Source: Pavona decussata (lineage: Eukaryota). From it: a stretch of 64,000 nt of DNA. Both the position numbers and the translations under genes were made by a program. Location: the NCBI GenBank assembly GCA_977016875.1, contig CDRNST010000051.1:434001-498000 (forward strand), read 5' to 3'. The notes under the pieces are model-generated. The model saw nothing but the letters and a program-made list of their open reading frames with translations, was not told the DNA's origin and made no database searches. Within the stretch, counting starts at the first letter, position 1, and the number at the start of each line of letters is the position of its first letter. Positions 17,350-64,000 of the stretch are shown here, piece after piece.

Positions 17350-20300
17350 TCAACAACGGTCACTACACTCGATCGAAAACAACGGCTTTATAGGGATACG
17401 GCAGTTCGGTCCTTCCCAGCCTTCCAAGCACACTTTCCTTCCGTCACGTGGATCGCACGTGTAATGCCCGTGGACGGTGTCGTTATGCGGAACGCAGTAT
17501 TCACTGCAGTCGGGCCCATACCACCAGGGATTACACACTTTGATTCCATTGTCGGTGCATATGTACTGTGCTTCTTCCACGCTTCTATCCTCGTGCAAGC
17601 ATGTCAAAGAACAGTTGGGACTGAATCCGTGAAAGCCATCAAAGCAGACTTTGTTGCCGTCGTTATCGCACGCGTAATGGCCGAGTTCTTCATCGTCTTG
17701 TGGGACACAAAATACCGTGCACTTCTCGCCATGCCAGCCGTGCATGCACGTCTTACTTCCGTCAGGAGCACAGTTGTAATGTCCGCCATCGTCGTCGCGA
17801 GGAATGCATTGCGCACGACAGTCGCTGCCAAACCACGACGGTAGGCACTTTTTCATTCCATCTGAGAGTCTACATCTGTTGCGAGAAACAAAACGTCGCT
17901 TCAGTATGCGCGTGAATCTCTGTAAGAGTTCGCGGACAAACTAAGAGCACTTATTAGCAGCGTGTGCACGAGTTTGCTTTCCTGCGGTGGGAAGGTCTGC
18001 CCAAAATTATTTTGAATAATAACAAATCCGAAATTCTTTTCGGAGTACGACTGACACGTATAAAATACTTCGTGTAGTAGTGAAGGCCAGGCATGCGTTT
18101 TAGTACTGGTGCAAACAAAAGACGTACAGGAATCTGGCAGAATCAGAACATGTATGCCGTGAACCAGAGCCGCATGCGAGGGGTAGCCTGTGTGACAGTC
18201 CAACAGACATTTGGGGGAATATGGAAAGGAGATTAATTGATTAATGAATTTAAAGGGTGTCAGAATCTCAGGGAGGGAGGAGGTGGGGCTAAAGGCTTCA
18301 CATATCTCGACCCCAGTCAATTCTCTAACTCAAATCGGGATAAGGATTGTCACTGACACAGGATGGCGGGATGGATCAAAATCTAATGACTTACTTGTAA
18401 TGACCCAGCTCGTCGCTGTCCTGAGGCGCGCAATACGTAGAGCACCGCGAGCCAAACCAGTTTTTTACGCAGCTCTTACAAAATGGCCCTTGCCAGTTTC
18501 GCAGGCATCTCTTGTTTCCTTCCGTATCACAGGAGAAGTGTCCACTCTGCGGGTCATCCCGCGGGACGCAGTATCGAGTGCAGCTGCTTCCAAACCAACC
18601 AGGCCTGCAAACCTTTCTTCCCTCTTGATCACAAGTGTAGTGCCCGCTCGAGTCATCCCGCGGGATACACTTCACATTGCAAGCTGCACCGTAGTAATTC
18701 TTGTCACAGTACAACTCCAGCTCAAGTCCTACGCTAATGCGACTTGCAGTGAGCATCAGGTTTTTCCTCAGTGGACTATGAGATGGCCCTGGTCTGACGG
18801 AAGCTACTTTGATGTGCGTGCTTTCCACGAAGTCATCTCTTGTGTATTTGTCTTTATCCCAGACTTGCACGCCTATGGTAATGGTGCCCTGAAAGACGAA
18901 AAACTTTTTACTTAAGCTGCGTGATTTAAAATTATATTCGAGAGCATTTTGAGCAGACTTAACGGCTAGCCCTTCTGTTGTCTTAGACACATGTACAGTC
19001 GAGTAAAAACCTGAACAAGCACGCCGCTTGAAAGTTTCCGGTTGCGGTAAGATTTTCGCGTGTGCTTCCGAAATTATGTTACTTACCGTCTCGTGGGAAG
19101 CTGTTTCTCTCGACAGAAGGCACTTGAGACCGACAGAAGGCACTTGAGACAGGGACAGCATGAACAGACTCAAACAACGCGACGAACCAATCAAAACCGG
19201 CAAGGCAAAATTTCTACACCACGTAACAGATGAAAAGGACAGGAAACGTATTCAAGCCCTGTGAATCTCAAATCTGGGTCTTTAATCTGAATTTGTAGTC
19301 AGGATTTCTATTTGGGAGATCAAATCCAAACGCGAACCCGGACTTTAGTTTGTGTTGTTTTCAGAACACTTGCCATCGGTTGAGAAAGTGTGCGAGATTT
19401 TACGTTCATTAGCCAATCACACTACGAAGCAGAGTTAAATCAAAAGCGTTTATGAACAAACAAAACCGCTCTATGCACGCAATCACCTGAAAAGAATCAA
19501 AGGCAAACTCTCTCCTGATATTAATGTTGTGATGGTTGTCATTATGTCCAACCACCCCTGTCTGGCTTCTTCCCAAGTTACATCTGCGTGTAGAGCCGGA
19601 CCCTGACTGCGTCACGCACAGCTTAAAGTAGGCGTCGCACGGATAGCAGCGGCCAAAGTTAAACATCAAGTGGTCGCAGCATTTTCCATTGCTCATACGA
19701 TGGGTCGGGTTTCTGTAGCTTTTGAGGGTGATCACTGCTCGCCCCGTTCCTTCACAAGGTACCTGTTAAGCACAAAGATAAACGTTTGAGATGTCCATCC
19801 ACGCTCCACGCGTGCGCTGCTTTCGCCACGCACGTTGGACGGACGGTCGGGTAAATCTTTTAATACTTTATTATCTCTCCGCCATGTTCCTCTTGGCTTC
19901 TACCCTTTGGATGTTATTTTTTACCATTTTCTATCCTCGTTGCTTTGGATTCCTCCTATTTTCCGAGTTTCAAAAATCCCTCAACGAAGTTACCAGTTTA
20001 ATTAATATTTGGAACCTTCAGCTTCTTAGGGTTAATCCGAACATTTTCCTCTCCATTGTCTTTTGTTTAAAACAAAAGAACAATTGTTATTTAGAATTTT
20101 TCAGTATATTAAAGAAAAACAATCGTAAAGTACAATGGTCACATTTTGCAAGACTCGTAAACAAATGTGACTGCGGTTTTTCTAATCGTCTGACAGTGCC
20201 TCGATAACCAATTCAAAGACGGGTGTTAAAAGCTCGGGTAACGAAGAGGGCGGAAGATCTTCTGCCATTCTTTACTGAAGTTTTTTTCAGTGCAAAACGA

Positions 20301-24335: not shown

Positions 24336-27300
24336 TCAGTTCTTACTTTTAATCAGACAATTTAGCCCTTCCCAGCCGGCCTTGCACACTCTGCTCCCAT
24401 CACGTGTATCACACGTGTAATGCCCGTGCATGTTGTCGTCATGAGGCACACAGTACTGCCGACACTCGGGTCCATACCACCACGGCTTGCATTGCATGAA
24501 TCCATCCTCAGTGCAATCGAAGTTACCTAGCTGGGTGGAGTTATTGCACGTCAGTGAACAATTGGCTCCGTATCGACCTAGCAGACAATCTCTGCAGTCC
24601 GGGGGTCGGTATCCATCTAAGCACACTTTGTTGCCATGGATATCACAGGTGTAATGCCCTCGCATGTCATCATCTCGGGGAACACAGAACACCGTGCAGT
24701 TCTCACCATACCACCCATCTTTGCACATCTTACTTCCGTCATGCGCACAGGTGTAGTATCCGTTGTCATCATCCTCGTGAGGAATGCAGTGCGAACGGCA
24801 TTCGGCCCCAAACCACCACGGTAAGCAATCTTTCTTGCCATCGGCGGGCCTGCATCTGTCACCCCAAAAAAATGCACCAAAAATGTCAAAAAGGGGTTCA
24901 AAATATCATGGGTTGTCCTAATTTCCCAGTAGTGAGAAATCATTATTTTCCAAGCCCAAACTGATCGTGATGACCAAAGTGACTGGCCTGTCGTTTTTCT
25001 AACATCAGACCCATGATCATCATTTCCATACATTGACTAATCGGCGTAAACATTTCATGTAGTTTTCAAAGCTTATCGAAAAAAAAAATGGTAATTGCTC
25101 ATAGCGTATGTAAACACAACATTGGCTTCTGTTACGCTGTCAGAATTATCTTGAGCGACAGCTGAGGAAGGACAGTTTGAATGCCAAAATTAGTGACAAA
25201 CGTTAGACCACTTGAGAAGACCCTCCAAGAGTCGAAGACTCTAGATCTAATTTTAAACACCTCAGAGTTTCATTAGTATCGATGGCAGTACAAATTCGCT
25301 CTAGTTGAGCCACTGTTTCCATTAGCTCGCGTGCGTTCTTCTCTACGCATGCTTTAAACTGTAAACTGATCATTAAGTTAATGCGCTCTCACTTACTTGT
25401 AATGTCCTTGCTCTTCACCATCCTGAGGTACACAGTATGTAGAACAGCGTGGACCAAACCAGTTTTTTACACAGCTCTTGCAAGATGGCCCTTGCCAGTT
25501 TCGCAAACATTGCTTATTTCCCCATTTATCACAGTTGAAGTGTCCATTCCAAGGGTCATCCCGCGGGACGCAGTATCGGGTGCAGCTGCTTCCATACCAA
25601 CCATCCCTGCAAATCTTTCTTCCCAGATAATCGCAAGTGTAGTGCCCGCTCGAGTCATCCCTCGGGATACACTTAACAGTGCATGAATCACCGTAAAAGT
25701 TTTCGTCGCAGTACACCTCTAGATCAAGGGTTAGTCTAACGCGTCTTCCTCTCAGCTCTTGACGGCTTCGGTAGTGGGACGATACGCCGGGTCTTACAGA
25801 AGGAAGCGTCACGTACTTCTCGACGCGCTCCACAAACTCATCGTTAAAAATTCTGTCCTTGTCCCAAACTTCCAGCCGTAACTTGATGTTGCCCTGAAGC
25901 AAAATTTAACAAAAATTTATGGGGGCTTTTAGAGGTCCGTAGGTAGTTTCTGTTTTCTTATAACGAGAACGATTTACTCGGCCTTGCTCGGATGCAAGAA
26001 CAAATATTTTGTCAGCATGATGTAGAAAAAAGAGTGGTTTGCAATTGATTGTTAAAACTGATTTTGCATTTGCTTTGGTTTTACTTTACTACACATTGTG
26101 ATTGGTTAAACACCATTCAGTTCCTTAACCAATGAGAAGCAAAACAAACTGAAACCCAATAGTGGATTGTCATATGTATTTTCCCGCGTTACATGTTCTA
26201 GCTCAAAATTTTGATTGGTCCAATGCGCTGACTTGCTTCTTTCGTGATTGACCAGAGAAAATATTTTGGGGTTTGATTTTACCATGATAACAAGCTCAAT
26301 TGTTGTTATATAATTATTAATGAAACGATCTTTTCTGTGCACTGCGAATGAAATCAATTTACATGCAAGACTCGTGCAAGTGTCTCACGAAGTGAAGCGA
26401 GGAACTTCATCAGTTTTGTTATGTTAATTATTATATTTTTTTACTTATTAATAAAAGACAACGCACCTACCAGTGTTTTCTTTTAAGAATAAGTTATTCG
26501 TTGAGTTGATTTTACGTCCTTGTTTTTTGTCCCGTAATGGCAGCTGATGCACTATACCTTGACTCATGAATAATTTATAATTTGAATTAAATTCTGAGTA
26601 AATTAATATAAAGTTTACAGCTGATTTAGCGAGGGAGTGAATTCAGCCCACATTACGATAACTCGTTCATTGCGCATGCGCGCATTCACGAGTTAAAAAG
26701 GGACCGAGTGTGTGCTAAGAATTCAGGGTGAGAGATAACTTGTACAACTCGTGTCTGGAGTATCTGTTCAGATTAGTAGTTAATGTTGACCACGTCAAGA
26801 AACGTTCAGTACATTACTCATTTGTCCTTCTTTTAGATGAAGCATTTATGAGACGAGCTAAAGACAGGGTTGAGAAAGGCTTATCATTAAATTGAAAAAT
26901 TGGTTGGAAGCGTCTGCATATGTATACATGGCATGCTGCATGCCGCCTGAACAAAGGTCGTAACCACGCTAAGGATAGGAACTGGAATGTACTTACAGCA
27001 AACGATTTGAAAGCAAAGTCCTTCCTGATGTTAATTGAGTTGTGATTGTCCTCTTTTCCAATTACCCCGGTCGTAGCTCGTCCAATATTGCAGTCGGAGC
27101 GTGATGCTGAGTCCGTCACGCACAGTTTAAAGTAAGCGTCACACGCTGAGCAGCCAATGAATTTGAAGTCACAGCAATCTCCGTTGCTTTTACGATGTGT
27201 CGGATTGCTGTAACTTTTGAACGTGACGACTACGTGCCCCGTGCCTTCACAGCTCACCTGTTGAGATTCAGAACAGTGGTCAAGTAAGTTGTTACACGAG

Positions 27301-33254: not shown

Positions 33255-36200
33255 TTACCACGAGATCTCTTGAACTTCACACATCATCTCGTTCATCTCG
33301 TACTGGGAGAGAACATCAGCTGCAGGGTTAACCTTGCAGTGTAGAGTCCTGTCCATTGAGCTGCCTTTCTCATTTCCTTTGTCGTTCCGTTGTCTCTTAT
33401 AAGGGACTGGCTTGGATCGGGATCTGCAACTGTACATGCCGTAAAAAAGAGAGGTTTATAAAGTAAATCAGGTGTTCAAGACTTTTCTCTGTTTTCATCT
33501 TGCACTACGGACTTGATTCAACTTGCACTATGACTCGACCATCTTGCACTATGAGTGGACCCGAGTTGTAGTCGAAATGGCTTTAAAATGTTAGCAACTC
33601 ACCTCAGCAAAGCTATCATACCTCCAGCACATAGGACCAACAGAAGCGCAAAACCTCCAGTTATCAATCCCATGCGCGTTTTTGTCAGCCATTTTTCTTA
33701 AGGCGCCTTTTTACTTTGTTTCTCTATGGGTAGCATTCCACTCTCAGTTGGTGGCTCAGCCGGTATGATGTATTCTGTAATATGTTCTGATTCGGTGGAA
33801 GCCGTGGAAGATGTTGACGGCGTGGACGATGTTTCTGGCGAGTGGGTTGTAACTCCTGAATAATGAACAAATAAAGAGAATCATTACAAAAAGAAGTTCC
33901 TTTAGTTACAGCTGAATGGAATAAACCTGTTAGATGCCTTATTTCAAAGAGTCGCCTCTGACCGATGCCCAGCCGTTCTGTTTAAAACTTTATCTCTGCA
34001 TTCGATTGAGTCCAAAAGACCTTTAGAAATCACTGCATTACGCGTTTCACAAGCACTAAACAAAAGAAACTTCAAAAAAATCGTAATCATTATTTTTTGG
34101 GCAAATAACTGAATCGCATGGTTACGTGTACATTCAAAACGAAAACGGTTTTTTTTGTCTTCTACTGATCGTGGCTCTAATAACTTGAAACTGACGGTAA
34201 CAATAATTACATTATGACAATTGTCCGTTTTTTCAAGGAGCCCACGTTAACTTCCTCATTTCTTCCCAGTGCTTTATGACCGATAATTATTTGTTATTAA
34301 GTCTTAAGCAACGACCACGCCATAGAACGCTTGAATTTTTAAAAATAAATCAGTGTATTCGGTCTATAATTTGAATTGTCAGAAATAGAAGTCTGGGGTA
34401 AGCGATAGCGCTCGACAAAGTGTATCTGGTACTTGTACTTACTGTGAAGACAGCTTTCTCCTTCCCAACCTTCCAGGCACACTTTTTGACCCGTCTCTTT
34501 ATGACATGTGTAATGTCCTAGGTAACTGTTCTGTGATCTGCAAAACACAGTGCAGTTAGGTCCGTACCAATGCTTGTAACATAATTTGCTTCCATCCGCG
34601 ACATCACAAGTGAAGTGCCCAGAAGAATCATCTCTAGGGATGCACATCACGGAGCAGGTAGGGCCATACCAGGCTTGGTGACAAATTATGGACCCGTCCG
34701 AGGGCTCACAATCATAATGTCCCCTGGAGTCATTCCTAGCGACGCAATGCGTGGAACAATTGGGTCCAAACCAATGCTGGTGGCATAGCTTTCTACCATC
34801 ATTGCCATCGCATTGGTATTGCCCGTGAGAGTCATTTCTCGGTGTGCAATACACTGTGCAATTTGGGCCAAACCAGTCGTGATGACATATCTTGGTGCCA
34901 TCCCCGACACTACAATGGTAGTGCCCTCGTGAATTGTTCATTGATTTGCAGTACGTTTTGCATTCACTTCCAAACCAGTTGTCCAAGCAAACTTTGCTAC
35001 CATTAATTTTACCACACGTGTAATGTCCATGGGAGTCATCGTGCGGGGCACAGAATAAAGTGCAACTAGCTCCGTACCAGTTGCTATGACACTTTTTGCC
35101 ACCATCGATTTTATTGCAGTTGTAATGGCCAAACCAGTCGGTGTCCTGAGGAACACAATGTGTACTACAATTCTCGCCATACCAGTCTGGGTTGCAGATC
35201 CTTTGACCCGACTGTGGATGGCAAGTGAAGTGGCCAACATCATCATGTCTGGCAGCACAATAAACTTTGCAGTTCGGACCATACCAGTTGTGGGAACATA
35301 ATATGCTTCCATTTATTGCACACTCGTGTTGACCCATGGAATCATTCCTGGCTTTGCAGTGCACGGTACAGTTTTCGCCAAACCAGTTTGGAAGACACTC
35401 CTTCGCTCCAGTGCCACTGTGACAAAGATAATGACCTGAGGAATCATTTCTCGGTGAACAAAAAATATCACAGTCACCTCCGAACCATCCTACCAGACAC
35501 TCTCGTTTCCCAGTAGTGGAATTACACGTGAAACCCATAGAGGAATCATTCTTTGGTGTGCAATCACACGATGGACCAAACCAGCCTTTTAAACATATTT
35601 TGTTTCCGTTTGAGCCGCAGTTGTAACCTGCAATGGTGTCATTGGTTTGTTTGCAATAAACGTTGCACTGGCTTTTACCGTACCAGTTCTGCAAACAAAT
35701 CTTTTGTCCCTGTGAATCGCAGGTATACCCCGCAAGGGAGTCATTCCTAGGCATACAGTGCACTTTACAACTGGGCCCATACCATCCTTTTAGACACACC
35801 TTTCTCCCTGTGCCAGACTCACATGAGTAGTGTCCATGCGTGTCATCATCATGAGGGACACAATACACTTTACAGCTTGCACCGTACCATCCGGCTCGAC
35901 AGATCCACTCACCAGTGGCTTTATTACAAGTGTAATGTCCTGCGGTATCGTCATCGCGTGCTACACAATACGTAGTACAACTAGGACCATAATAATCTTG
36001 ATTGCATTGAACGGAGTATTGTAGCACCGTTGTAGAAGGATTACCTCCCAGAGATACTTGCACCCATTTTGCTTGCGATGCCCACGATGTCGGGGTGACG
36101 GTGATTTGGCGTTGATATTTGTCGATGAGATCATCTGCAGATATTCCATCTTCATCCATAGCCTGGATACTTACAGCGAATGAACCCTAGCAATATGAGA

Positions 36201-37736
36201 TTACAATTGTAAACCCAACGGTGATCAACATCTACGTTCTTCTTGATTCTAATTCAAAGTGTAACATATAGTTGGCGAGAATTAAATAAATGATCAACAA
36301 AGGAAACAACTTTAAAACAAAAAAAATTCTGTCATGCAGCACACAAAGAAGAATTTCTATTAACAGAAGCCCATAACCTCTATCTCTCATTCTAAGCCTT
36401 GGAGTGAACCCTTTCCCGAAAAAGATTTATTTTTTGAGGAAGTCTTAGAGGACCTTTGGAACCCCTGCAGTTCAAATACCCAATCAAAAAAGATAAAAAG
36501 ACAATGGAACAGTCAGTTTTCATATGTCATTCGTTTCCCGTGTAAATCTATTTTTAGAACTGCTTTTCCTGGTAAAGGGTTGAATTAAGGAATTAATAAA
36601 GATGGAGGCTCCTAGTCCTGGGCTTCTGCTATTGATCAAATTTTAGATCGCCAAACTTGACACAAAACTAAAGTTTTCCAATTTGTGTTGGTAAATGTAA
36701 GTTGACGGTCCTGTGCACTTCACAGAAACAGTTGAAGGCAGACATGTTGGTTACTTGTTGACCGAAGTAGAGCAAATCTCTATAAGTAACTTTTTCAATA
36801 ACCTTTCTGCGCTGGAAACTTGTAGTCAGTGTGAGTATGTGTGTAGCTATCGTGCAACAGGTACATGCTGCTTACTTCAACCAATTAAACCTAAATTACA
36901 CTTCGCGTGTCTTGATGTCATCTGCACGGCGTGGCATGAACTGATAATGAACGACAAAAAAAATCCTCTTTGGGGAAGTGGTAATAAAGTATGTATGTAT
37001 GTATGACAAACAATGTCCTCAGCTCTTCAGGGTAAGTCAAAGAAAGTTCATAATAACTCGTAAAAACGTTACCTTCCATGAAGAAAACGTCCACACGAGA
37101 GGATTTCTTCCACCGCTTTTGAAGGCCTCGTTTAGCTTAAAGACAACGTACTTTGTGTTATCGTAGGTCTTTGTCGTTACAGATTTGACACAAGATCCAC
37201 CGGCATTTTCTTTCAGGCATATCTTTAAATAATAGTCGCAACTCCTGCATGGTGACTCACAGCAGTTTCCGTTTAAGTCTAAATTGGAGGGATTTGAAAA
37301 GCTCTTCAAAAGGACGGACAGTTTTCCTCCTGGGCCGGCTGATATGGGAACCTGTTGGCGCAAAATGCAAGACTTTATAAAATTTAACTTCAAAATTAAA
37401 CTGGGGTTTTGGATGGTCTCTGACACAGCTGTCTGAAACGGCGTTGAAACGACACACTGAGTCCCGACTGACTAGGTGGCTGACTAACTGTATGGATGGA
37501 TGGATGGATGGATGGATGGATGGATGGATGAATGGATGGATGGATGGATGGATGGATGGATGGATAGATGGATGGATGAATCCGGATGGATGCAACCTCG
37601 TTCCCAGGGTCTCTCAACTTTCCGCCCAAGCTTGGCTGGGAAGATGAGAGACCCTGGGAACGAGGTTGGGATGGATGGCGGATTGTCTCGGCCTAAGTGC
37701 TTGACTGACTGACTGACTGACTGACTGACTGACTGA

Positions 37737-37772
<36 letters not shown>

Positions 37773-40407
37773 ATGAATGAACGAACCTTGCTAATTGCTC
37801 ATTTGGCCCATGCAGTTCTTCACGCACTTATACCCGGAGGCATGCAACAGTGAGCTTTTTTCTGTTATTTCATAGATTTTCTAGGCCCATGGCGATTGTC
37901 TCTTGAATTTGAAAAGGCGAAATAAGAACTTTTCGTTCCTTCGTTCAAAAAAAGTTACATACAAAATTTCATGCAATGTCTAAACTTGCAGAGTATACTC
38001 TGCTATGTGTCAATCCCACATTTCAATGTAATTCTTTTCATTTTGTTTTTATTCTTAACTGATGATTTTAGGTATTACTATTAGGAAGGTCACAGGAAAA
38101 CAACCCCTGCCAAGATATTATTACTGCGAATTATCAAGAGCGTGCGGCAATGCGATTTCGAAACCTTAATTGTTTCTCTGACTTTTTGAACTACCTGTAT
38201 GACCAAGGAGGCGGATGTCTGCCAATCAAATACGTAAAATAAATAACAACATTATCCACCTCACACTGTCGAACTATTGCATTGACTAATGGTATCGCTG
38301 TTTTTGGCCGACTCTTTGAAGTATTATATTGAACAATGAGGCCCTGACCGGAACGCAATTTCATTGAATTATCTACCTCTGCACGTTGCTCAACCGAACG
38401 TCTGAGTAGAACTTCCAAGTTATTTCCAGTAGATCGGAGATACTGATCCGTTTCACCTTTAATTTATTTTATGGAACACTTGCCGTAATTTGACTGTAAT
38501 TTTTTTTGTCTCCGAGATCGGTTTTTGTCACTGCTGAAACTTAGCGTCACTGATCTTCTCATTTGTCATAGAAAACGAAAGAGGATCACGATGATCCTGT
38601 TTTGTGGAAACAAACTCTGTGGCCACTCGACCCAAAATTAATCTTCTTAACTTTTACTTAAGCGATTAACAGTTTTTCCAAAGTTGGTTTCGAAACAACT
38701 GAGATAGGTCAGGGTTTACGAATCCGTTAAATGGCTGCAGACAACTTGAACCGCGAAAACTTGAAACTGGTGAAAAGTTAAAGCCTTGAGACAACGTATT
38801 TGATTTGGTTAAGAACTGTCGGTTATCCCGGTTTCGGTCCTTAGTTGTGCGCAAGTCATGTAAAGAGTAGCAGAAAGAATTAAACAATTTTTAATACGAC
38901 TGTATTTGCAAATCAGTGAGTTCCTTGCCTTCAGCAGTCCGGTACGACCTTTTTGCTTTTCGGTAATCTATATTTTGAGGGGCTGAAATAGTAATGTAAC
39001 TTGATTATAAACGCAAAACTAAAGAAGGGAGCTCTGCAACGAGAGAAAATTGTTTTCCAAAACATCTTTTCCCGTTTGTGCCGACATGAACTATTTGTTT
39101 CCCCAAAAGACTTTGAGTATCTCAAATAGTTCAGACACGTTTGTCAAACAATACCCGGTTCGTGTCCGCGCAAATGATCAGGAAAAGTTTTATAGACCTT
39201 TTCCTCATGCATGTTATAATGTTGCGTTTTCCATAATTTAACCCCCCCCCCCCCCACCCCTAATCTCGTACCAGTCGCGTGTGTCTCCTTCGTATCGTTT
39301 CACCCGTATGTTATGACCAGTGACCGATCTTCATTGAGGCGTGTAACACAAGTGCACTTTAATTTTTACTCTTCATTTCCATTTTGGATATATGCAAACA
39401 AATGTAATCGATGCTCCGTCGGTGAAAACTTTGTTTCAGAGAGCAATTTGAAAATTTGATAGGGTCGAAATCCAAGCAGAAATGAAAAGAAAACAAAATG
39501 TTCTTGTTTACTAGTTCAGTGTTGAAAAGCGGACTTAACTTGAATTGCAGCCGTGGGAATGAGCCTTCAATAGCAGAGCTCAGCCTCCACGCTTTGACAT
39601 GCACGGGTCAAATCTGGCGGATCAGCAACGACTTGTTTGCAAAATAAAATTCTCTAGTCTTGAAGAGCAGTTTGTTAGAAAAGTTGCTAAATCAACAAAA
39701 ACATCTGGGCTTCTTTCGCGGGCCATGAAAAGAATGTAACTATTAAATTGATTTAGGATATGGCCCTGGCATTGACCCGGTCACAGAACAGGAAACCCGC
39801 GCAACCAACCAGCTAAATAATTTTGCCGATCACGGACCCAGCCCGCACACAGAGACAACAGAAAAATTGCTTCGTTTTGCCGTTTATCAAGTAAAGATAC
39901 AGCTGAAAGCTGGGGGCAGTGCTCAGACAGTTTCATTTACGTTAGCTAAGTACAATTTTTCAAAGAATTAAAGAAAATCTTGATTTAACTCCTTGTGAAA
40001 GGGTAGCGTTCAAGCTGGGCCAGCTACATGTCACTGATGCAATATTACCTTTCGACAACAAATGTTGACGGATCATTATAAAATATGTGTTTTACAATAC
40101 AGTGAAAATCGACAAATCTAAATACTGTTAGTATGATCCCAGTAAAAACATTCATATCCTTAGCAATGCGTACTGGATGTTAACTTTGAATCTTTTTTTT
40201 TTCGGCCAAGTTTAAAATCTGCAGAGGCAGTCTGCAAACATTGTTTATCAAAGTGTAACTGGTTTCAGTGAACTGCTAACATTAACATTCCCTTTTCTAA
40301 ACGGCTACTGTCTATAATACTTATTCTTGCTGACGTACCTGGAAACTGATGAGCAGAGATAAAGAGAGTAGAAAAACAGCGGAGTATGAAGGCGCGAAGA
40401 GTGCCAT
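33255..40407 (-). CDS. Delta-like protein: signal peptide, C2/MNNL, 15 DSL-like units, Ser/Thr stalk, in-frame TAA at 33698-33700, then TM helix and cytoplasmic tail (749 aa as assembled, ~837 aa without the stop)
   Basis: Exons 40339-40407 ([23 protein letters not shown]), 37073-37351, 34443-36186, 33603-33855 (..[35 protein letters not shown]), 33255-33423 ([16 protein letters not shown]); all GT-AG and in phase. Confidence 0.86.
37492..37770. repeat. Compound microsatellite (GGAT)n/(GACT)n/(GGCT)n interrupted by a MITE at 37593-37668 (TSD ggatggatg)
   Basis: Read directly from the sequence. Confidence 0.92.
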
Positions 40408-44465: not shown

Positions 44466-47400
44466 TTATTTCCCTACTGGCCTCCAACCACCTCCGCCTC
44501 CCCCTACGGGTCTCCAGCCTCCACCACCGCCTCCAACAGGTCTCCAACCTCCCCCACCACCTCCGCCTCCTGGACGCCAGCCACCTCCACCTCCACCTCC
44601 ACCACCATTTCCGCCTCCACCACCCCCTCCGCCATTACAATACGAGCTCTTATCGAAACTTCCCTTCGCGACATTATTCCTGAAGTCGTTCATCATGTTT
44701 CCTGCGGGACGATAGCGGCCTACCACGTAGGTACACCCTCTGGAGGTAGCTTTTCCCATCCCCAGCTCTACACTCTTCTTCCACACCACCTGGGTAAAGT
44801 GTCCCGTGCCGGATCCCCATCCGGGATTGTTGAAATTGAACTTGCAAACTTCTTTATACCTGAGTGAAAGATTGACAAAAGGAGATATCTTAGCACCCCT
44901 CTTCTGAATTTACCCTGTGTTCTAATCCTGTTTTAAATGTTTGGTATACAACAGTCTCATATGAAGATGAGTTTTCATCCCGTCACATTTTAAGTAGTAA
45001 AAAAATGCAGAAGAAAAAAATGCAAATAATAGTAAAGGCGAAAAAAATACTAGAGATTATAATTGTTTTTGTTAACTTAAAGTTGAAACAAGACAATAAA
45101 CAAACAAATAAACGTAAACACGAACAAACGCGATTTAATTTAATACTCATCATATACCGCACGTAGATCGAAGACAGAATCAATTAAATGAGGTCAGAAT
45201 TCCTTCCAATCAATCAAACAAGCCGACGATGGCTAACTGGGTGGCTAAAATCTCTGTGTATATGTCTTTTTTTAATCAATCGAATAGTCTTAACTTTCAT
45301 TTAAGCAAACTCCAAGTGCTTTGAATATCACAAACTTGGAAAATATTACCCAATCAGCTGTCTGGCTGTACACTGACGGTAAATTTTAAATCCCTTATCC
45401 AATAGGCCATTTCCGAGTTGCTGAGAACCTCACTATGAAAGCGAGGCTAAGTGCAAGACTTTTCATACGAAAATGAGTTTTGTTTGCATATGAATGAAAA
45501 CTGATTTTCATAACAAAAACTTTGCACTTAGCCTCGCTTTCATAATGAGGTTCAAAGCAACTCGGAAATGGTCTATTGAGTTTTTTTCTTATCCAGTGCA
45601 TATAGTACTCACCACATTTCAACAGCCTGCTGGGCCGAAAGGTCACGACCGCACGACATAGCGAGATTCTCCCCCTGACCTGGTCTCTGACTGGAGCTCG
45701 AGTGCTGAAGACTTCCCCTGCGTGCTAGCCGCTGGGCATAAGCTGCTGCCTGCTGGCTCATACCAGAATCCAAACTCATATCCGGGGCATCGTGTATCCT
45801 GCGATACTTGTTATGTGCAGCCAAGCCATCTTCGTCAAAAGATCCATCCCCACCGTTACCTCCGCCACCCCCGTTTCCGCCCCCACCACCCCCGTTTCCG
45901 CCGCCACCACCGCCATTGCCGCCGCCACCACCCCCATTGCCACCGCCACCGCCCCCGTTGCCTCCTCCACCACCCCCATTTCCGCCACCACCACCCCCTC
46001 CGCCATAACAATATGAGTTCTTATCGAAACTTCCCTTAGCGACATTATTCCTGAAGTTGTTCATCATGTTTCCTGCCGGACGATACCGGCCCACTACGTA
46101 GGTACACCCTCTGGAGGTAGCTTTTCCCATCCCCAGCTCTACACTCTTTTTCCACACAACCTGGGTAAAGTGTCCTGTGCCGTACCCCCATCCAGGATTG
46201 TTGAAATTGAACTTGCAAACTTCTTTATACCTGAGTGAAAGATTAACAAAAGGAGATATCACATCAGAAATATTAGTCGTATACGCCCATACCTTAGTAT
46301 TGACTCAACCAAAACACTATTGCATCATTAGTAACGTCTCGCTTAGATCATTGTAATTAATGCGCTTCTCTATGGCCTACCTGATTATCTTATTCAAAGA
46401 CTACAATATGTTTTGAACGCTGCTGCTAAAGTGATCACTTGCAAGCGGAAGTTTGATCATGTCACGCCACTACTTATTGAGCTACATTGGCTCCCCGTCC
46501 GTCAGCGTATTGTACTTAAGATCTTATTGTAGACCTTTAAGGCACTCCAACTCCAATGTACTTGACTGAGCTCATCAGTCCTTATGTTCCCAGGCGAGCT
46601 CTTAGGTCTGCTGACCAACCTCTACTGAAGCAGCCAACGCACAAGCTCAAATTGACTGGCTTTAGGGCTTTTTCAGTGTGTGCGCCTTACCTCTGAAACC
46701 CGCTTCCATTTGAGATTAAAAGCAGCGCATTTCTCTCTATCTTTAAAGCTAAGCTTAAGACCTATCTTTTTCGACAAGCATATTTTTAGACCTTTAATTG
46801 ACTTTTGATTTTTTGATTCTTAGATCTTTTTTTACATTCTTTTAGTGTATAGATTATATGTTCGGCACTGTAAAGCGCATTTGAGCGTTAGGAANNNNNN
46901 NNNNNNNNNNNNNNNNNNNNNNNNNNNNNNNNNNNNNNNNNNNNNNNNNNNNNNNNNNNNNNNNNNNNNNNNNNNNNNNNNNNNNNNNNNNNNNNNNNNN
47001 NNNNNNNNNNNNNNNNNNNNNNNNNNCTGTGTTCCTGTTCCAAAGTACGATGGCTTACGGTGGCTGAAATCTCTGTGTACATGTCTTTTAAATCCATCAA
47101 ATAGTCTTAACTTTAAATTTTCATTTAACTAAATTCCAAGTTCTTGCAACTGATCGTGAACTTGAAAATATTTGCCCAATCAGCTGCCTCGGTTGCCTCT
47201 ATGCTGGCTAGGGGCCTGGTTGTACACTGTCATGAACTTGGAAATGTTTACCCAATCAGCTGCTTCGGTTACCCCATATGCTGGCTATTGCTAACTATGG
47301 GCCTGATTGTCCACTGTCAGTAAACTTTAAATCCGTTATCCCGTTGAGTTTTTTCTTATTCAGTGCATGCAAGGCTATAGTACTCACCACATTTCAACAG

Positions 47401-59739: not shown

Positions 59740-62700
59740 ATGTTCATAGCATACATACCTGTTCTTATTCTACTTATCTCGGTGAGTTTGAAAAATCGTA
59801 TTGTTCCAAAGATATATGTCAGGTTGAACTCAAAAACTAACATTTTCATTTCCGAATGCCATGAGCTCACAATCACTGAGAAAATTGCAAAACCTATTGC
59901 TGACTTGGGATCATTTCAATGTCAGGTTTTTAATTTTACAGTTATAATTACTGCAAATCTTCATATCGTTTGTTTTTTGCGTTAAATAGGCTGAGCACAA
60001 CATCTATCAGCAGGCTTAGTTTTACAAGCTGGCTTCCAGGGTACAGCCCCGAGTGTGACAGTAAATGAAAGCAGAAATTACGTAGTATAGATTTTTGTCC
60101 ATAAAACTAGCTGTCTTCTTTGCGTAATGTTTGAGTCTCGATTAAAACCTTTATGAGAGCTATATGGGCGATGTAGCACTGGATCTAGAGACGATCAATT
60201 GAGGTATTTAAATTATTAAACATGTTTTAAAGCAAACACACCATGAAACTTCATCATCTAATTTAGAAACGACATCATTGTTTTACACCTGTTCTTTACT
60301 ATTCATCAATTCTACAATACTGTTGCTTTACCATTTGCTTAGAACGAGAACGGACTGAAAAATTCATCTCACTGCCCTTCATATAATGATGTAGCGTTAC
60401 CACATGGTATCGTATAGATAACGTCATTACTGTGTAGATAAACAACATAATTGCAAGAAATTAAAAGTGAACAGGAGTGAATTTGTCGTGATATTGCGTG
60501 AAATTATCCCAGTCTATGTACTAGTCATTTCCATGACCACTTTTTCCCACTGATATTTCAATTTTCTTCTGATTTCTGTAACAATGCCCTCTCTGCATGG
60601 TGGGTACCATTTTAGTTTCCACGAGTCCAACCCACTGAAAGTTTGGATTTCTCGTTCCTAGCCAGTGTTTGACATTCACGGCTAACCGTTGTAATGGAAG
60701 GGGTAGTACTGACCGGGAACTTGGTCAACAATATAAGGCTTGGAATAAATGTGATGGAATATCAGTTTAAGCCTGGTGAATAAATGAGAATGATGTATTA
60801 TTCAGTAAGTGACACAGGCATACTTGCAAAAAAAAAATCCGAGTGCTCCTATCAGGAGTCGAACCTAAGACCCTCCGATTACTAGTTCGGACGCTCTACG
60901 GCTGAGCTACAGGAGACTCGTGGGAGCTAAGGCCATTAAACTAGGTTCATGGGATAAACATCCTGCATACTGCAAGGATTGGAATGTCATGTGTGGCCTA
61001 TGCGCGATGGAATAAATGTGATGGAGTATTTTAAGCCTGGTGAATAAATGAGAATGATGTCAAGTGACACAGGCATACTCTTTTTTTTCAAGTATGCCTG
61101 TGTCTCTTACTGAATAATACATCATTCCCAAAATAAGGCTTGTCACGTTCCGATTTGGGAAACTAAAAGGTGCTAAAGGCTAACTTACCAGTAACTATTT
61201 ATCCGCCCAATTCAAAAAATCTGTTGCGCCAGGTTTTTCATCTTGTTTATAAATCGGACCGATTATATTTTCATGAGCTCACTCATTTTCTTTGTCAAAT
61301 GGAGCCAAATTGGCCCAATTAATCGGTACGTGTAAATAAACCTTAAAAGAAACTATAATATAATGAGGGAAAAATTGGAGAAAGGACAAAGTGCTCCCCT
61401 AAACCTGACATGATTTGAGCTCTTGGAACATTGGAAAGTCTGGAAAGGCATGATGCTAATTAATCTTTTTGAAGTGTTTATTCCGAGTAATCGGAATACA
61501 CACTATTAATGATCAAGCATCTTCATTTGGTGTTCATAACTAAACTGTCCGAGAAATTGTGATGTCATGTAAGTGTGACGTTCTCTTAAACTGTTTTTCA
61601 ATTTGTGACATTCAATTTCAGGACCGCTGCAAAGGCTGGGGGATGTTATCGCTAAAACTGGTTAGCTACAAAAACCCAGAGAGTAAACTGTTCAATGGTG
61701 AATGTTGTGATACACCTTCGTGGTGTGGCGTAAGTCCGTGTGAGAATTATTTTAAATTCTGTGTGACGTCACTGGGTTCCTTGAAACCGTGTCACCTGGG
61801 TTACAGAAAGACCAAAGTGCTTGGCGATGATGACTTCCGGTTTCCTGAAGTTGGCGCCAGCCTGGGGACTAATTTGTTAAATCCACTGACTTACAACTTC
61901 TCTTACTGGNNNNNNNNNNNNNNNNNNNNNNNNNNNNNNNNNNNNNNNNNNNNNNNNNNNNNNNNNNNNNNNNNNNNNNNNNNNNNNNNNNNNNNNNNNN
62001 NNNNNNNNNNNNNNNNNNNNNNNNNNNNNNNNNNNNNNNACAACTTTGATTGGACTGACTGGTTCAATCTTGATACATTCAGAGCAAACATGTCTTCTTC
62101 CATGTTTCAACGGCCGAGTAAAGCATTACCAACTAAAACAATCGGCAAGACTAAACCTACATTTGGCAATGGGTTTTCGACCTGTGATTAGTTCATTGTA
62201 TTATTTTAATAATTGAAGAGTTTTGGGATGCCATGGCTGGTTACTATATAAAAGGATGATTGATCTTAGATTGATCTTAGAAACTGCTCTCAAAAGAGCC
62301 CTAACGCAGTGATGACACTAAGTAGTTCTTGCTTTGGTGATTTTTAAAAGGGCTTGAATTTTTCATTTGCCTTGTGGGGGTTTTGGTGGCAACTGAGTGT
62401 CGTGAAAAAAATTCAATCAAAGTTGACCCTGGCCAATTACAACAAACACCAACTACACAATAAGCCAATGAATCTAAATACGAAATAAATGCATGTCATA
62501 TAACAGGTGCCAGGATCAGCTGGAAAACGCGTGAGAGTGAGTCTGCCATTAGTTTTGATTTTACTTGTAAGCGGATAGAGAAAGCGAGTTCGAGTTCTTT
62601 GGGATAAAGATAAACCTAAAGTAAGCACGAATTGTCGGCATTCAAATGATAACCGCTAGCTCTAACATATGTATAACTTAATCCGTTCCTATTTTCCAGG

Positions 62701-64000
62701 GAAGCACTGTTGTGGTGGAGGTGGGGGATGATGACGGCTGTCATATTATAGGAGCCCTCCACGATTTCGTCGACAAGTATACTTTAACGCTAAATCAGTT
62801 ACAATCTGTTTATTCTTATGCAAAATCGTCGATTGACGGTACAGAAAAGCTCTGTGGCAAACGATCATGCATGACCATAAGTGTCACGCTATACTGTGGT
62901 CCTCACTATCTGGTGCCGGACTGCCGTACGTATTGTGTGTCACGCAACGATAGTTTTGGTCACTAGCAGTGTAACTACACTGCTGGACGTAAAATATGTA
63001 ATGAAGGGTGGTACGATCCCATCACAAATTGTTTAAAGAGACGTAAGCTTTGTACTCCCAGGAATGACTCCTTGTGACATTATAACTGCGATTCTTCCAG
63101 CGGAGAAAAGTTGTGTTAAGACGGGTGGACAGGGGATAATTGCACGGAAGGTGTGTAGCACTTGTTAACGTCACGATACAGTTAGCATATTGTGCTCTTT
63201 GCTAAGCCAAGGTTACCGGCGTCATTGTTTATTTATCTGTTTGTTTTGAATCACACTGCATGTGCGCATGTTTGTTCAAAAAAGACGTCCATTGAAGCTA
63301 CACATACAAAAACGCAAGTTTTTCACTTTTTGGCTGATGGACGTGAATTCATTGACGTAACAGCCTCCGCAAACAAAGAAACTTTGCTGCTTACTGCTCC
63401 TTATAATTTTCATCTGATTGCTCGCGCACGTCCTAAAGCAAATTTTCCTTTCGCAAAAAATGCTTCGCTGAACGCACTCAAACGCGTACAGGGATCAATA
63501 AGGCAGACAAAAAAGGCCTCGGTAGCGAAGAACTGTGGGTTTTGTTGTTTAAGTAGCTCTTCAATTTCAGTGCAAAGGTCAATGTTTAATAGAGACTGAA
63601 ATTCTATGTAACAGCCGTGAAGGTTGAAATAATTTTCAACACTCTCTAACAAACCGACCAAAAGGTTAAATAAGATTTTCATTTACTTTTCAGCTTGTTC
63701 TTATTCACCTTGTCATCAACCGACAATCCATACCCACGAAAGTACTATTGTGGTATTGGCAACGACAGTTACACCAGTTTCCACACCACATGTAGACGTT
63801 GCGATATCGTCAACAAATCCGTCAACCATTGATTTCCCTACAAGTCAGTCTACCGCGCATTACTTTATGACATCTTCATCTATTAGCTCGGTTTTAAGGA
63901 CATTTTCTGAAACAAAGCCCCACAGTTTACTTTACTTCACACCACATTCGTCGACTCTTCTATACGGCTTCCAAACCCAAACGCTACGGTCAATAGATTC
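59740..64000 (+). pseudogene. Delta-like C2/MNNL + 2 DSL units + Ser/Thr-rich stalk with three in-frame stops; runs off the window
   Basis: Exons 59740-59781 (MFIAYIPVLILLIS|GTGAGT), 61622 to gap (LVSYKNP..NGECC..CENYFKFC..LLNPLTYNFSYW), 62700-63150 with TAG 62964, TGA 63075, TAA 63117, and 63694 to beyond 64000 (open, S/T-rich). Confidence 0.82.
60744..61128 (-). mobile_element. Second tRNA-containing permuted element (tRNA-like core 60844-60916) with an inverted terminal arm
   Basis: Reverse-complement homologue of 50314-50644; gaataaatgtgatgg repeated at ~60744 and ~61010; inverted aagtatgcctgtgtc..atacatcattc at 61090-61128. Confidence 0.75.

Follow-up and report, generated by a model that had tools for sequence, protein, structure and literature searches.

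We consider it likely that the window (the whole 64,000-nucleotide stretch of Pavona decussata DNA analysed here) contains a genuine stony-coral gene of the Delta family that is transcribed and spliced, and in which DSL modules are chained so that the terminal hairpin of each one docks on the core of the next. In the protein, a C2/MNNL domain and one complete DSL would be followed by another 14 DSL cores, and these by a Ser/Thr-rich stalk with a transmembrane (TM) helix after it. Its repeating module would be the C3-C6 part of a DSL, consisting of the PRDD..GHY loop and the terminal W-x-G hairpin, and this hairpin is predicted to dock on the following module in the way that Delta and Jagged have their N-terminal YYG hairpin docked on the core. 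Docking of each hairpin on the next core would make every six-Cys window a full DSL fold and the chain a continuous stiff rod, built of local disulfide loops and occupying the position that EGF repeats have in canonical ligands. The original prediction that the last loop of one DSL doubles as the first loop of the next is supported in silico by the overlap of profile matches, by the superposition of predicted structures and by a rule on the residues of the hairpins.

The exons of the gene lie on the minus strand (Table 1, the 5' limit of the upstream exon being provisional), and the C2, array and TM exons were each analysed separately. The upstream exon matches residues 15-122 of the Oculina patagonica protein P0001 (tblastn) and, judging by the MNNL score on exon 37073-37381 alone, a C2/MNNL domain is present directly before the DSL, as in canonical ligands. 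The array exon holds the end of this domain, a Cys-free stretch, and then the first hairpin with the complete set of 15 DSL cores. In two studies, RNA-type contigs (X5 and X6) skip positions 36187-37072, 33856-34442 and 33430-33602, with joints at 36185/37072, 33854/34442 and 33429/33603. Since these contigs skip the introns exactly, they confirm the exon structure; splice sites and spliced contigs thus agree with the earlier claim that the 15 units lie in one 1744-nt exon. The stalk and TM exon was located solely by the tail of the Desmophyllum protein (tblastn), and no credible match to the C-terminal tail of the Oculina protein was found downstream of the array by the same program. The sequencing runs that contain the stretch are labelled as single organism or coral metagenome. 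A further run, X19, was discounted as RNA evidence: it is labelled metatranscriptomic, its contig is unspliced across the introns and it carries ~6% differences.

Table 1. Position and content of the features described in the window.
Feature	Positions	Strand	Content
Paralogue 1	17350-19203	-	C2-like N-terminus; 7 DSL cores in two ORF blocks; one inserted hairpin, CVKNWFGSRC
Paralogue 2	24336-25902	-	C2-like N-terminus; 7 DSL cores, arranged as in paralogue 1; two inserted hairpins, CVKNWFGPRC and CLLGRYGANC
Stalk and TM exon	33603-33855	-	Ser/Thr-rich, Cys-free stalk and transmembrane helix; supported by sequence, splice sites and splice joints
Array ORF	34339-36159	-	606 aa, uninterrupted frame of 606 codons; 62 Cys (2 + 15x4)
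Single array exon	34443-36186	-	1744 nt; AG acceptor at 36186, GTAAGT donor at 34442
Fifteen 4-Cys DSL cores	34450-35967	-	ORF residues 65-570
Unit 9	35062-35157	-	D-T-D-W-F-G-H-Y; Phe conserved in Oculina, Desmophyllum and Nematostella (four anthozoans with Pavona)
Sole free-standing first hairpin	35977-36006	-	ORF residues 52-61; C-x3-YYG-x2-C, before unit 1 only
Upstream exon	37073-37381	-	N-terminal part of C2/MNNL; Pfam MNNL (PF07657) 27.1 bits, cut-off 22.5
Fourth C2 and poly-DSL copy	61559-63152	+	Broken by the N run at 61910-62039
N runs	46895-47026; 61910-62039		

In the intron between the C2 and array exons, contig depth spikes to ~5000x at 36962-37098 and 36277-36550, with many loose ends, which points to a high-copy repeat or a mobile-element fragment. 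Just upstream of the C2 exon, positions 37400-37830 hold a short-period simple repeat that reads as ORFs of HPSI- and SQSV-type repeats on one strand, with repeats of the MDGW type on the other.

Although the exon encoding the TM helix is spliced in, as seen in the X5 and X6 contigs, the assembly allele carries an in-frame TAA at 33698-33700 (minus strand), 12 codons ahead of the helix. Plus-strand position 33700 is A in the assembly and G in X5, X6 and X19, which turns the codon into CAA (Gln). The TAA allele is shared by run X1, which is probably the source sample, and Desmophyllum has a Lys at this position. The CAA codon in three runs together with the Lys in Desmophyllum suggests that most individuals probably make a membrane-anchored form.

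The chain consists of one six-Cys DSL and 14 further four-Cys units. As originally proposed, a separate YYG loop accompanies the first unit only, the C-x3-YYG-x2-C hairpin preceding unit 1 alone. The units follow the pattern C-x11/12-C-x7/8-C-x8-C with a linker of 1-3 aa, and the parts of each core come in the order PR[DN]D..GHY loop, x7/8 linker and W-Y/F-G hairpin. The expected four cysteines are present in each unit, in keeping with the 62 of the whole ORF; the length of the 14 later units, put at 32-35 aa in the earlier description, needs a small correction, since the measured range is 31-35 aa. Each of the overlapping windows has the spacing of a six-Cys DSL, C-x8-C-x3-C-x11/12-C-x7/8-C-x8-C, and shows [WY][YFH]G where the first loop would be. 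Unit 5 departs slightly, with a linker of 1 aa where the DSL spacing would lead one to expect 3 aa.

Tandem Repeats Finder detected no tandem repeat at the DNA level in the array, which argues that the units are old and diverged and do not stem from a recent duplication or a duplication in the assembly. The comparison with other corals points the same way. The Oculina orthologue also has 15 units, of which units 1-11 pair one-to-one with those of Pavona, and the mean identity of orthologous Oculina/Pavona units is 67%, as against 46% among units inside the protein; the array would thus be old, with each unit having its own identity. These observations bear on the proposal that the locus is a decaying pseudogene or a repeat assembled in error. 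The in-frame TAA ahead of the TM helix in the assembly fits with it, and Gazave et al. (2009; PMC2770060) consider misassembly possible for Nematostella genes. However, spliced contigs occur in two studies, the stop codon reads CAA in three other runs, the array frame runs uninterrupted over 606 codons, units are kept one-to-one in another coral genus and a DNA-level tandem repeat is absent, so that we hold this proposal to be very improbable.

Evidence for the sharing of loops comes first from the Pfam DSL profile (PF01414; 46 positions, gathering cut-off 24.2 bits), which matches the array ORF with 392 bits (E 4e-120) over 15 stretches. Internal windows that include the last hairpin of the previous unit align to profile positions 1-44 with 47.1-53.9 bits, and the same internal units without the borrowed hairpin align to positions 13-44 with 34.6-38 bits. 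For the genuine first DSL (unit 1), the score is 46.5 bits with its first hairpin and 30.2 without, a gain of 16.3 bits; the gain from a borrowed loop, 10-16 bits, is about equal to that of the true first loop. Because windows with a borrowed loop score like the genuine first DSL, the last hairpin of a unit is by this measure as good a first loop as a real one. In a six-frame scan of the genome, 15 matches above the cut-off tile the exon every ~102 nt, neighbours overlapping by 8-11 codons, and 13 of the 15 begin at profile position 1. The exceptions are unit 5, which matches positions 14-44 only, and unit 6, whose match begins at position 5. Overlapping Pfam DSL matches with a period of ~34 aa had been named as a check of the original prediction, and they were found at full length and with a period of 34 aa.

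Across all units, six-Cys windows score 46.5-53.9 bits and four-Cys units alone 30-38 bits, so that even the latter pass the cut-off of 24.2. This would also suit a different interpretation, in which the units are autonomous four-Cys beads of truncated-EGF or DSL-core type on short linkers, the sharing is an artefact of where the six-Cys boundary is drawn and no hairpin functionally docks on its neighbour.

Predicted structures provide a second line of evidence. The alignments used for modelling (A1, 45 rows; A2, 118 rows) were made of the repeats of the array and of its homologues, with true first-loop windows and internal windows mixed. An internal six-Cys window modelled alone (ORF residues 457-504) reached a pLDDT of 94 in AlphaFold. 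Its superposition on solved DSL domains, with the borrowed loop included, gave 0.8 Å over 47 residues for Serrate, 1.1 Å over 47 residues for DLL4, 1.1 Å over 45 residues for Jagged-1 (187-231), 1.2 Å over 47 residues for Delta, and 1.4 Å over 47 residues for both Jagged-2 and DLL1. The best unrelated fold, a Tie2 EGF, superposed at 2.9 Å over 44 residues (Z 3.7). The other computable check that had been named, the superposition of an AlphaFold window on a solved DSL, thus gave a fit of ~1 Å (0.8-1.4 Å, 45-47 residues) that takes in the first loop, the evidence here being AlphaFold predictions from a network trained on solved DSL structures.

A model of three consecutive units (pLDDT 96, pTM 0.74) retrieved 27 Foldseek matches at E<=1e-3, all of them Notch-ligand DSL-EGF rods bar one SCARF1 entry. 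DSL domains aligned to this model in either of two registers, residues 1-81 (4xl1_E) and residues 35-112 (7alk_A). In VIA, the whole three-unit rod aligns to DSL-EGF1-EGF2 with a Z of ~9 and an rmsd of 6-8 Å, which is this large because the rods bend differently. Units 2-3 of the model overlay EGF1-EGF2 of Jagged and Serrate, an observation that speaks for autonomous beads, as does the existing proposal that the DSL is a truncated tandem of EGFs (PMC2725086). On the other hand, the pTM of 0.74 for three units indicates a fixed geometry between modules, and the superposition at 0.8-1.4 Å takes in the borrowed loop, both of which favor docking over beads.

The same data bear on the proposal that the array belongs to an ordinary protein with EGF repeats, of MEGF/Draper/teneurin type, and has no DSL at all. 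Pfam gives weak matches to EGF_Teneurin and, with 85.8 bits across the ORF as a whole, to EGF_TEN, and the automatic NCBI names of two Nematostella homologues are 'protein draper' and 'MEGF11'. However, EGF_TEN and EGF_Teneurin both overlap DSL units and are the only EGF families above the Pfam cut-off in the array ORF, the DSL profile scores 392 bits against 86, the units have four cysteines and neither six nor eight, and an MNNL domain lies upstream. The structural neighbours are DSL regions of Notch ligands, canonical Notch EGF repeats appearing in Foldseek only at E>1e-2. An EGF-type identity was rejected on the Pfam scores and the Foldseek neighbours, and we give it hardly any credence.

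The third line of evidence concerns the residues of the hairpins themselves. DSL domains have an aromatic residue before Gly (YYG) as the mark of the first loop, and G-W-x-G as that of the last. We classed the hairpins of the array gene, of its paralogues and of 27 homologues. Among the 88 that directly precede another core, 86 have an aromatic residue or His at position 6, with W at position 5 as well. Such a residue occurs in none of the 15 array-final hairpins, where E, T, Q or G is found instead, and in none of the 6 hairpins that precede an inserted extra hairpin, which have Q or E; the inserted hairpins themselves are aromatic in 6/6 cases, the residue being Phe. The association is strong (Fisher p = 2e-20), a value that ignores shared ancestry and that is drawn from rows many of which are orthologues. 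These counts argue that the signature of a first loop is carried only where the hairpin must act as one.

In the six-frame profile scan, 27 of the 32 DSL matches in the genome fall in one cluster on the contig, which besides the array gene contains the two paralogues and a fourth copy. The short inserts that had been noticed in the seven-unit paralogues were recovered: KSCVKNWFGSRC/KSCVKNWFGPRC and RDCLLGRYGANC occur in the minus-strand paralogues of Table 1. The further suggestion that such inserts supply a free-standing first loop and reset the chain is also supported, given that all six inserted hairpins have the aromatic residue and none of the six loops preceding them does. Separately, the fourth copy on the plus strand has DSL matches at 62895-63149 that carry three kinds of stop (1 TGA, 1 TAA and 1 TAG); this copy may be a pseudogene or may contain introns left unresolved.

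This pattern, with the aromatic at position 6 kept only before a core and lost at the ends of arrays and before inserts, counts against independent beads, as it is hard to explain without contact between modules. We therefore regard the bead interpretation as improbable and retain the one in which each terminal hairpin docks on the next core.

One element of the original prediction goes too far, namely the description of the repeats as interlocked: judged by homology, each disulfide would close a loop of its own, and the overlap concerns the fold boundaries only. In Jagged-1, the cysteines of the DSL pair as 187-196, 200-212 and 220-229. The ~1 Å predicted fit and the cysteine spacing shared with Jagged-1, together with this pairing, suggest that the disulfides of the array would form sequential local loops (1-2, 3-4 and 5-6). 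Local disulfides would leave each four-Cys unit disulfide-autonomous, and they can be cited in support of the bead interpretation.

The closest proteins come from stony corals, namely Oculina patagonica P0001 (958 aa, 61% identity) and a Desmophyllum protein, with more distant matches in Nematostella, Actinia, octocorals, Aurelia, a bivalve and Mnemiopsis. Two Nematostella proteins match, P0003 (E 1e-142), which is 45% identical to the array ORF and has the same four-Cys chain, and P0006 (E 1e-106). The first sequence in Additional file 7 of Gazave et al., jgi 212534, lies within P0003, and Nematostella genes whose DSL domains are unusually arranged are mentioned in that study (Gazave et al., 2009; PMC2770060). 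The MNNL domain, the several DSLs, the absence of EGF repeats and the homology to Nematostella place the array gene in this published family of cnidarian poly-DSL Delta-like genes. DSL tandem-repeat genes were also reported in bivalves in 2021 (PMC8166818). In the portions consulted, these two papers count DSL domains and question the reality of the genes, but do not describe loop sharing, transcription or structure.

With canonical DSLs (PF01414; 2VJ2, 4XL1, 5MVX, 7ALT, 7ALK, 4XBM) the array shares the cysteine spacing, the YYG-type and PRDD..GHY motifs and a predicted fold within ~1 Å. In canonical ligands, however, one DSL is followed by 6-16 EGF repeats, whereas the coral gene has 15 chained cores with a four-Cys period and is devoid of EGF repeats. 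A related principle is known from Jagged-1, where the last loop of EGF1 forms one structural unit with EGF2, the exon-6 unit (Pintar et al., 2009; PMC2725086). There too, the C5-C6 hairpin forms an integral part, at the N-terminus, of the unit that follows it, and the DSL would correspond to a hairpin plus a truncated EGF. In Jagged-1 this concerns one EGF1/EGF2 junction of a vertebrate ligand, while the coral array repeats the principle 14 times with DSL-type cores. The idea that the DSL fold is internally repetitive, which had been put forward from the array, is a sound inference but was already proposed: as cited in Pintar et al. (2009; PMC2725086), Cordle et al. (2008) suggested an origin of the DSL from tandem short EGFs that became truncated.

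We also observed arrangements of this kind outside the cnidarians. The delta-like 1 protein of the bivalve Ruditapes philippinarum (P0025) has a C2 domain, two DSLs with a common hairpin (166-209 and 200-242), ordinary EGF repeats and a TM helix, so that loop sharing would extend beyond cnidarians and beyond EGF-less proteins. In the ctenophore proteins P0026 and P0027, from Mnemiopsis and a related ctenophore, a C2-like N-terminus is combined with a TM helix and with arrays of DSL-like cores that include many extra hairpins, the Pfam DSL assignments being precomputed. According to a 2025 preprint, Mnemiopsis yielded no bona fide Delta-like ligand (10.1101/2025.09.30.679519). We found no description of loop sharing between DSLs in the literature searched for tandem, consecutive or multiple DSL, a search of limited coverage that makes for weak evidence of novelty. 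Reading the modules as overlapping, together with the hairpin rule, makes a modest addition to a gene family that was known and to the published proposal of a truncated-tandem-EGF origin of the DSL.

The loop that contacts Notch differs in the coral array from that of canonical DSLs, in that most cores bear an N-glycosylation sequon in it. In 8 of the 15 cores (units 3-7 and 11-13) the PRDD loop has an N-D-S/T sequon where its D-D would be, and seven of these eight (units 3-7, 11 and 12) are conserved in the Oculina orthologue, which suggests that the rod is a glycan-covered spacer. On this sequence evidence, the rod may be largely N-glycosylated and may serve to keep the C2-DSL head off the membrane; its position would be the one that EGF repeats have elsewhere, as the overlay of units 2-3 on EGF1-EGF2 suggests. 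In Jagged-1, mutation of F207 abolishes Notch binding (PMC3888931). Phe is present at the equivalent position in unit 9 only, and the head DSL has Ala there, which makes its canonical Notch binding, and thus a ligand role of the head, doubtful.

A more speculative extension, which we regard as unlikely though worth stating, would see the DSL as a single-copy remnant or seed of a four-Cys repeat fold with obligatory docking of hairpin on core. The poly-DSL proteins of anthozoans, bivalves and ctenophores would then represent the ancestral tandem state behind the lone DSL of Delta and Jagged, and unit 9 could bind Notch from within a rod shielded by glycans.

The DSL is the module that gives every canonical ligand its specificity in binding Notch. 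The family of EGF-less Delta-like proteins of cnidarians has barely been studied. As poly-DSL domains overlap, counting non-overlapping matches truncates such proteins in annotation, and the rule of the aromatic residue at position 6 provides a simple marker of docking hairpins. Finally, a natural, expressed and conserved chain of 15 modules, in which each window is predicted to form a complete DSL, offers a means to test the proposal that the DSL is a hairpin joined to a truncated EGF.
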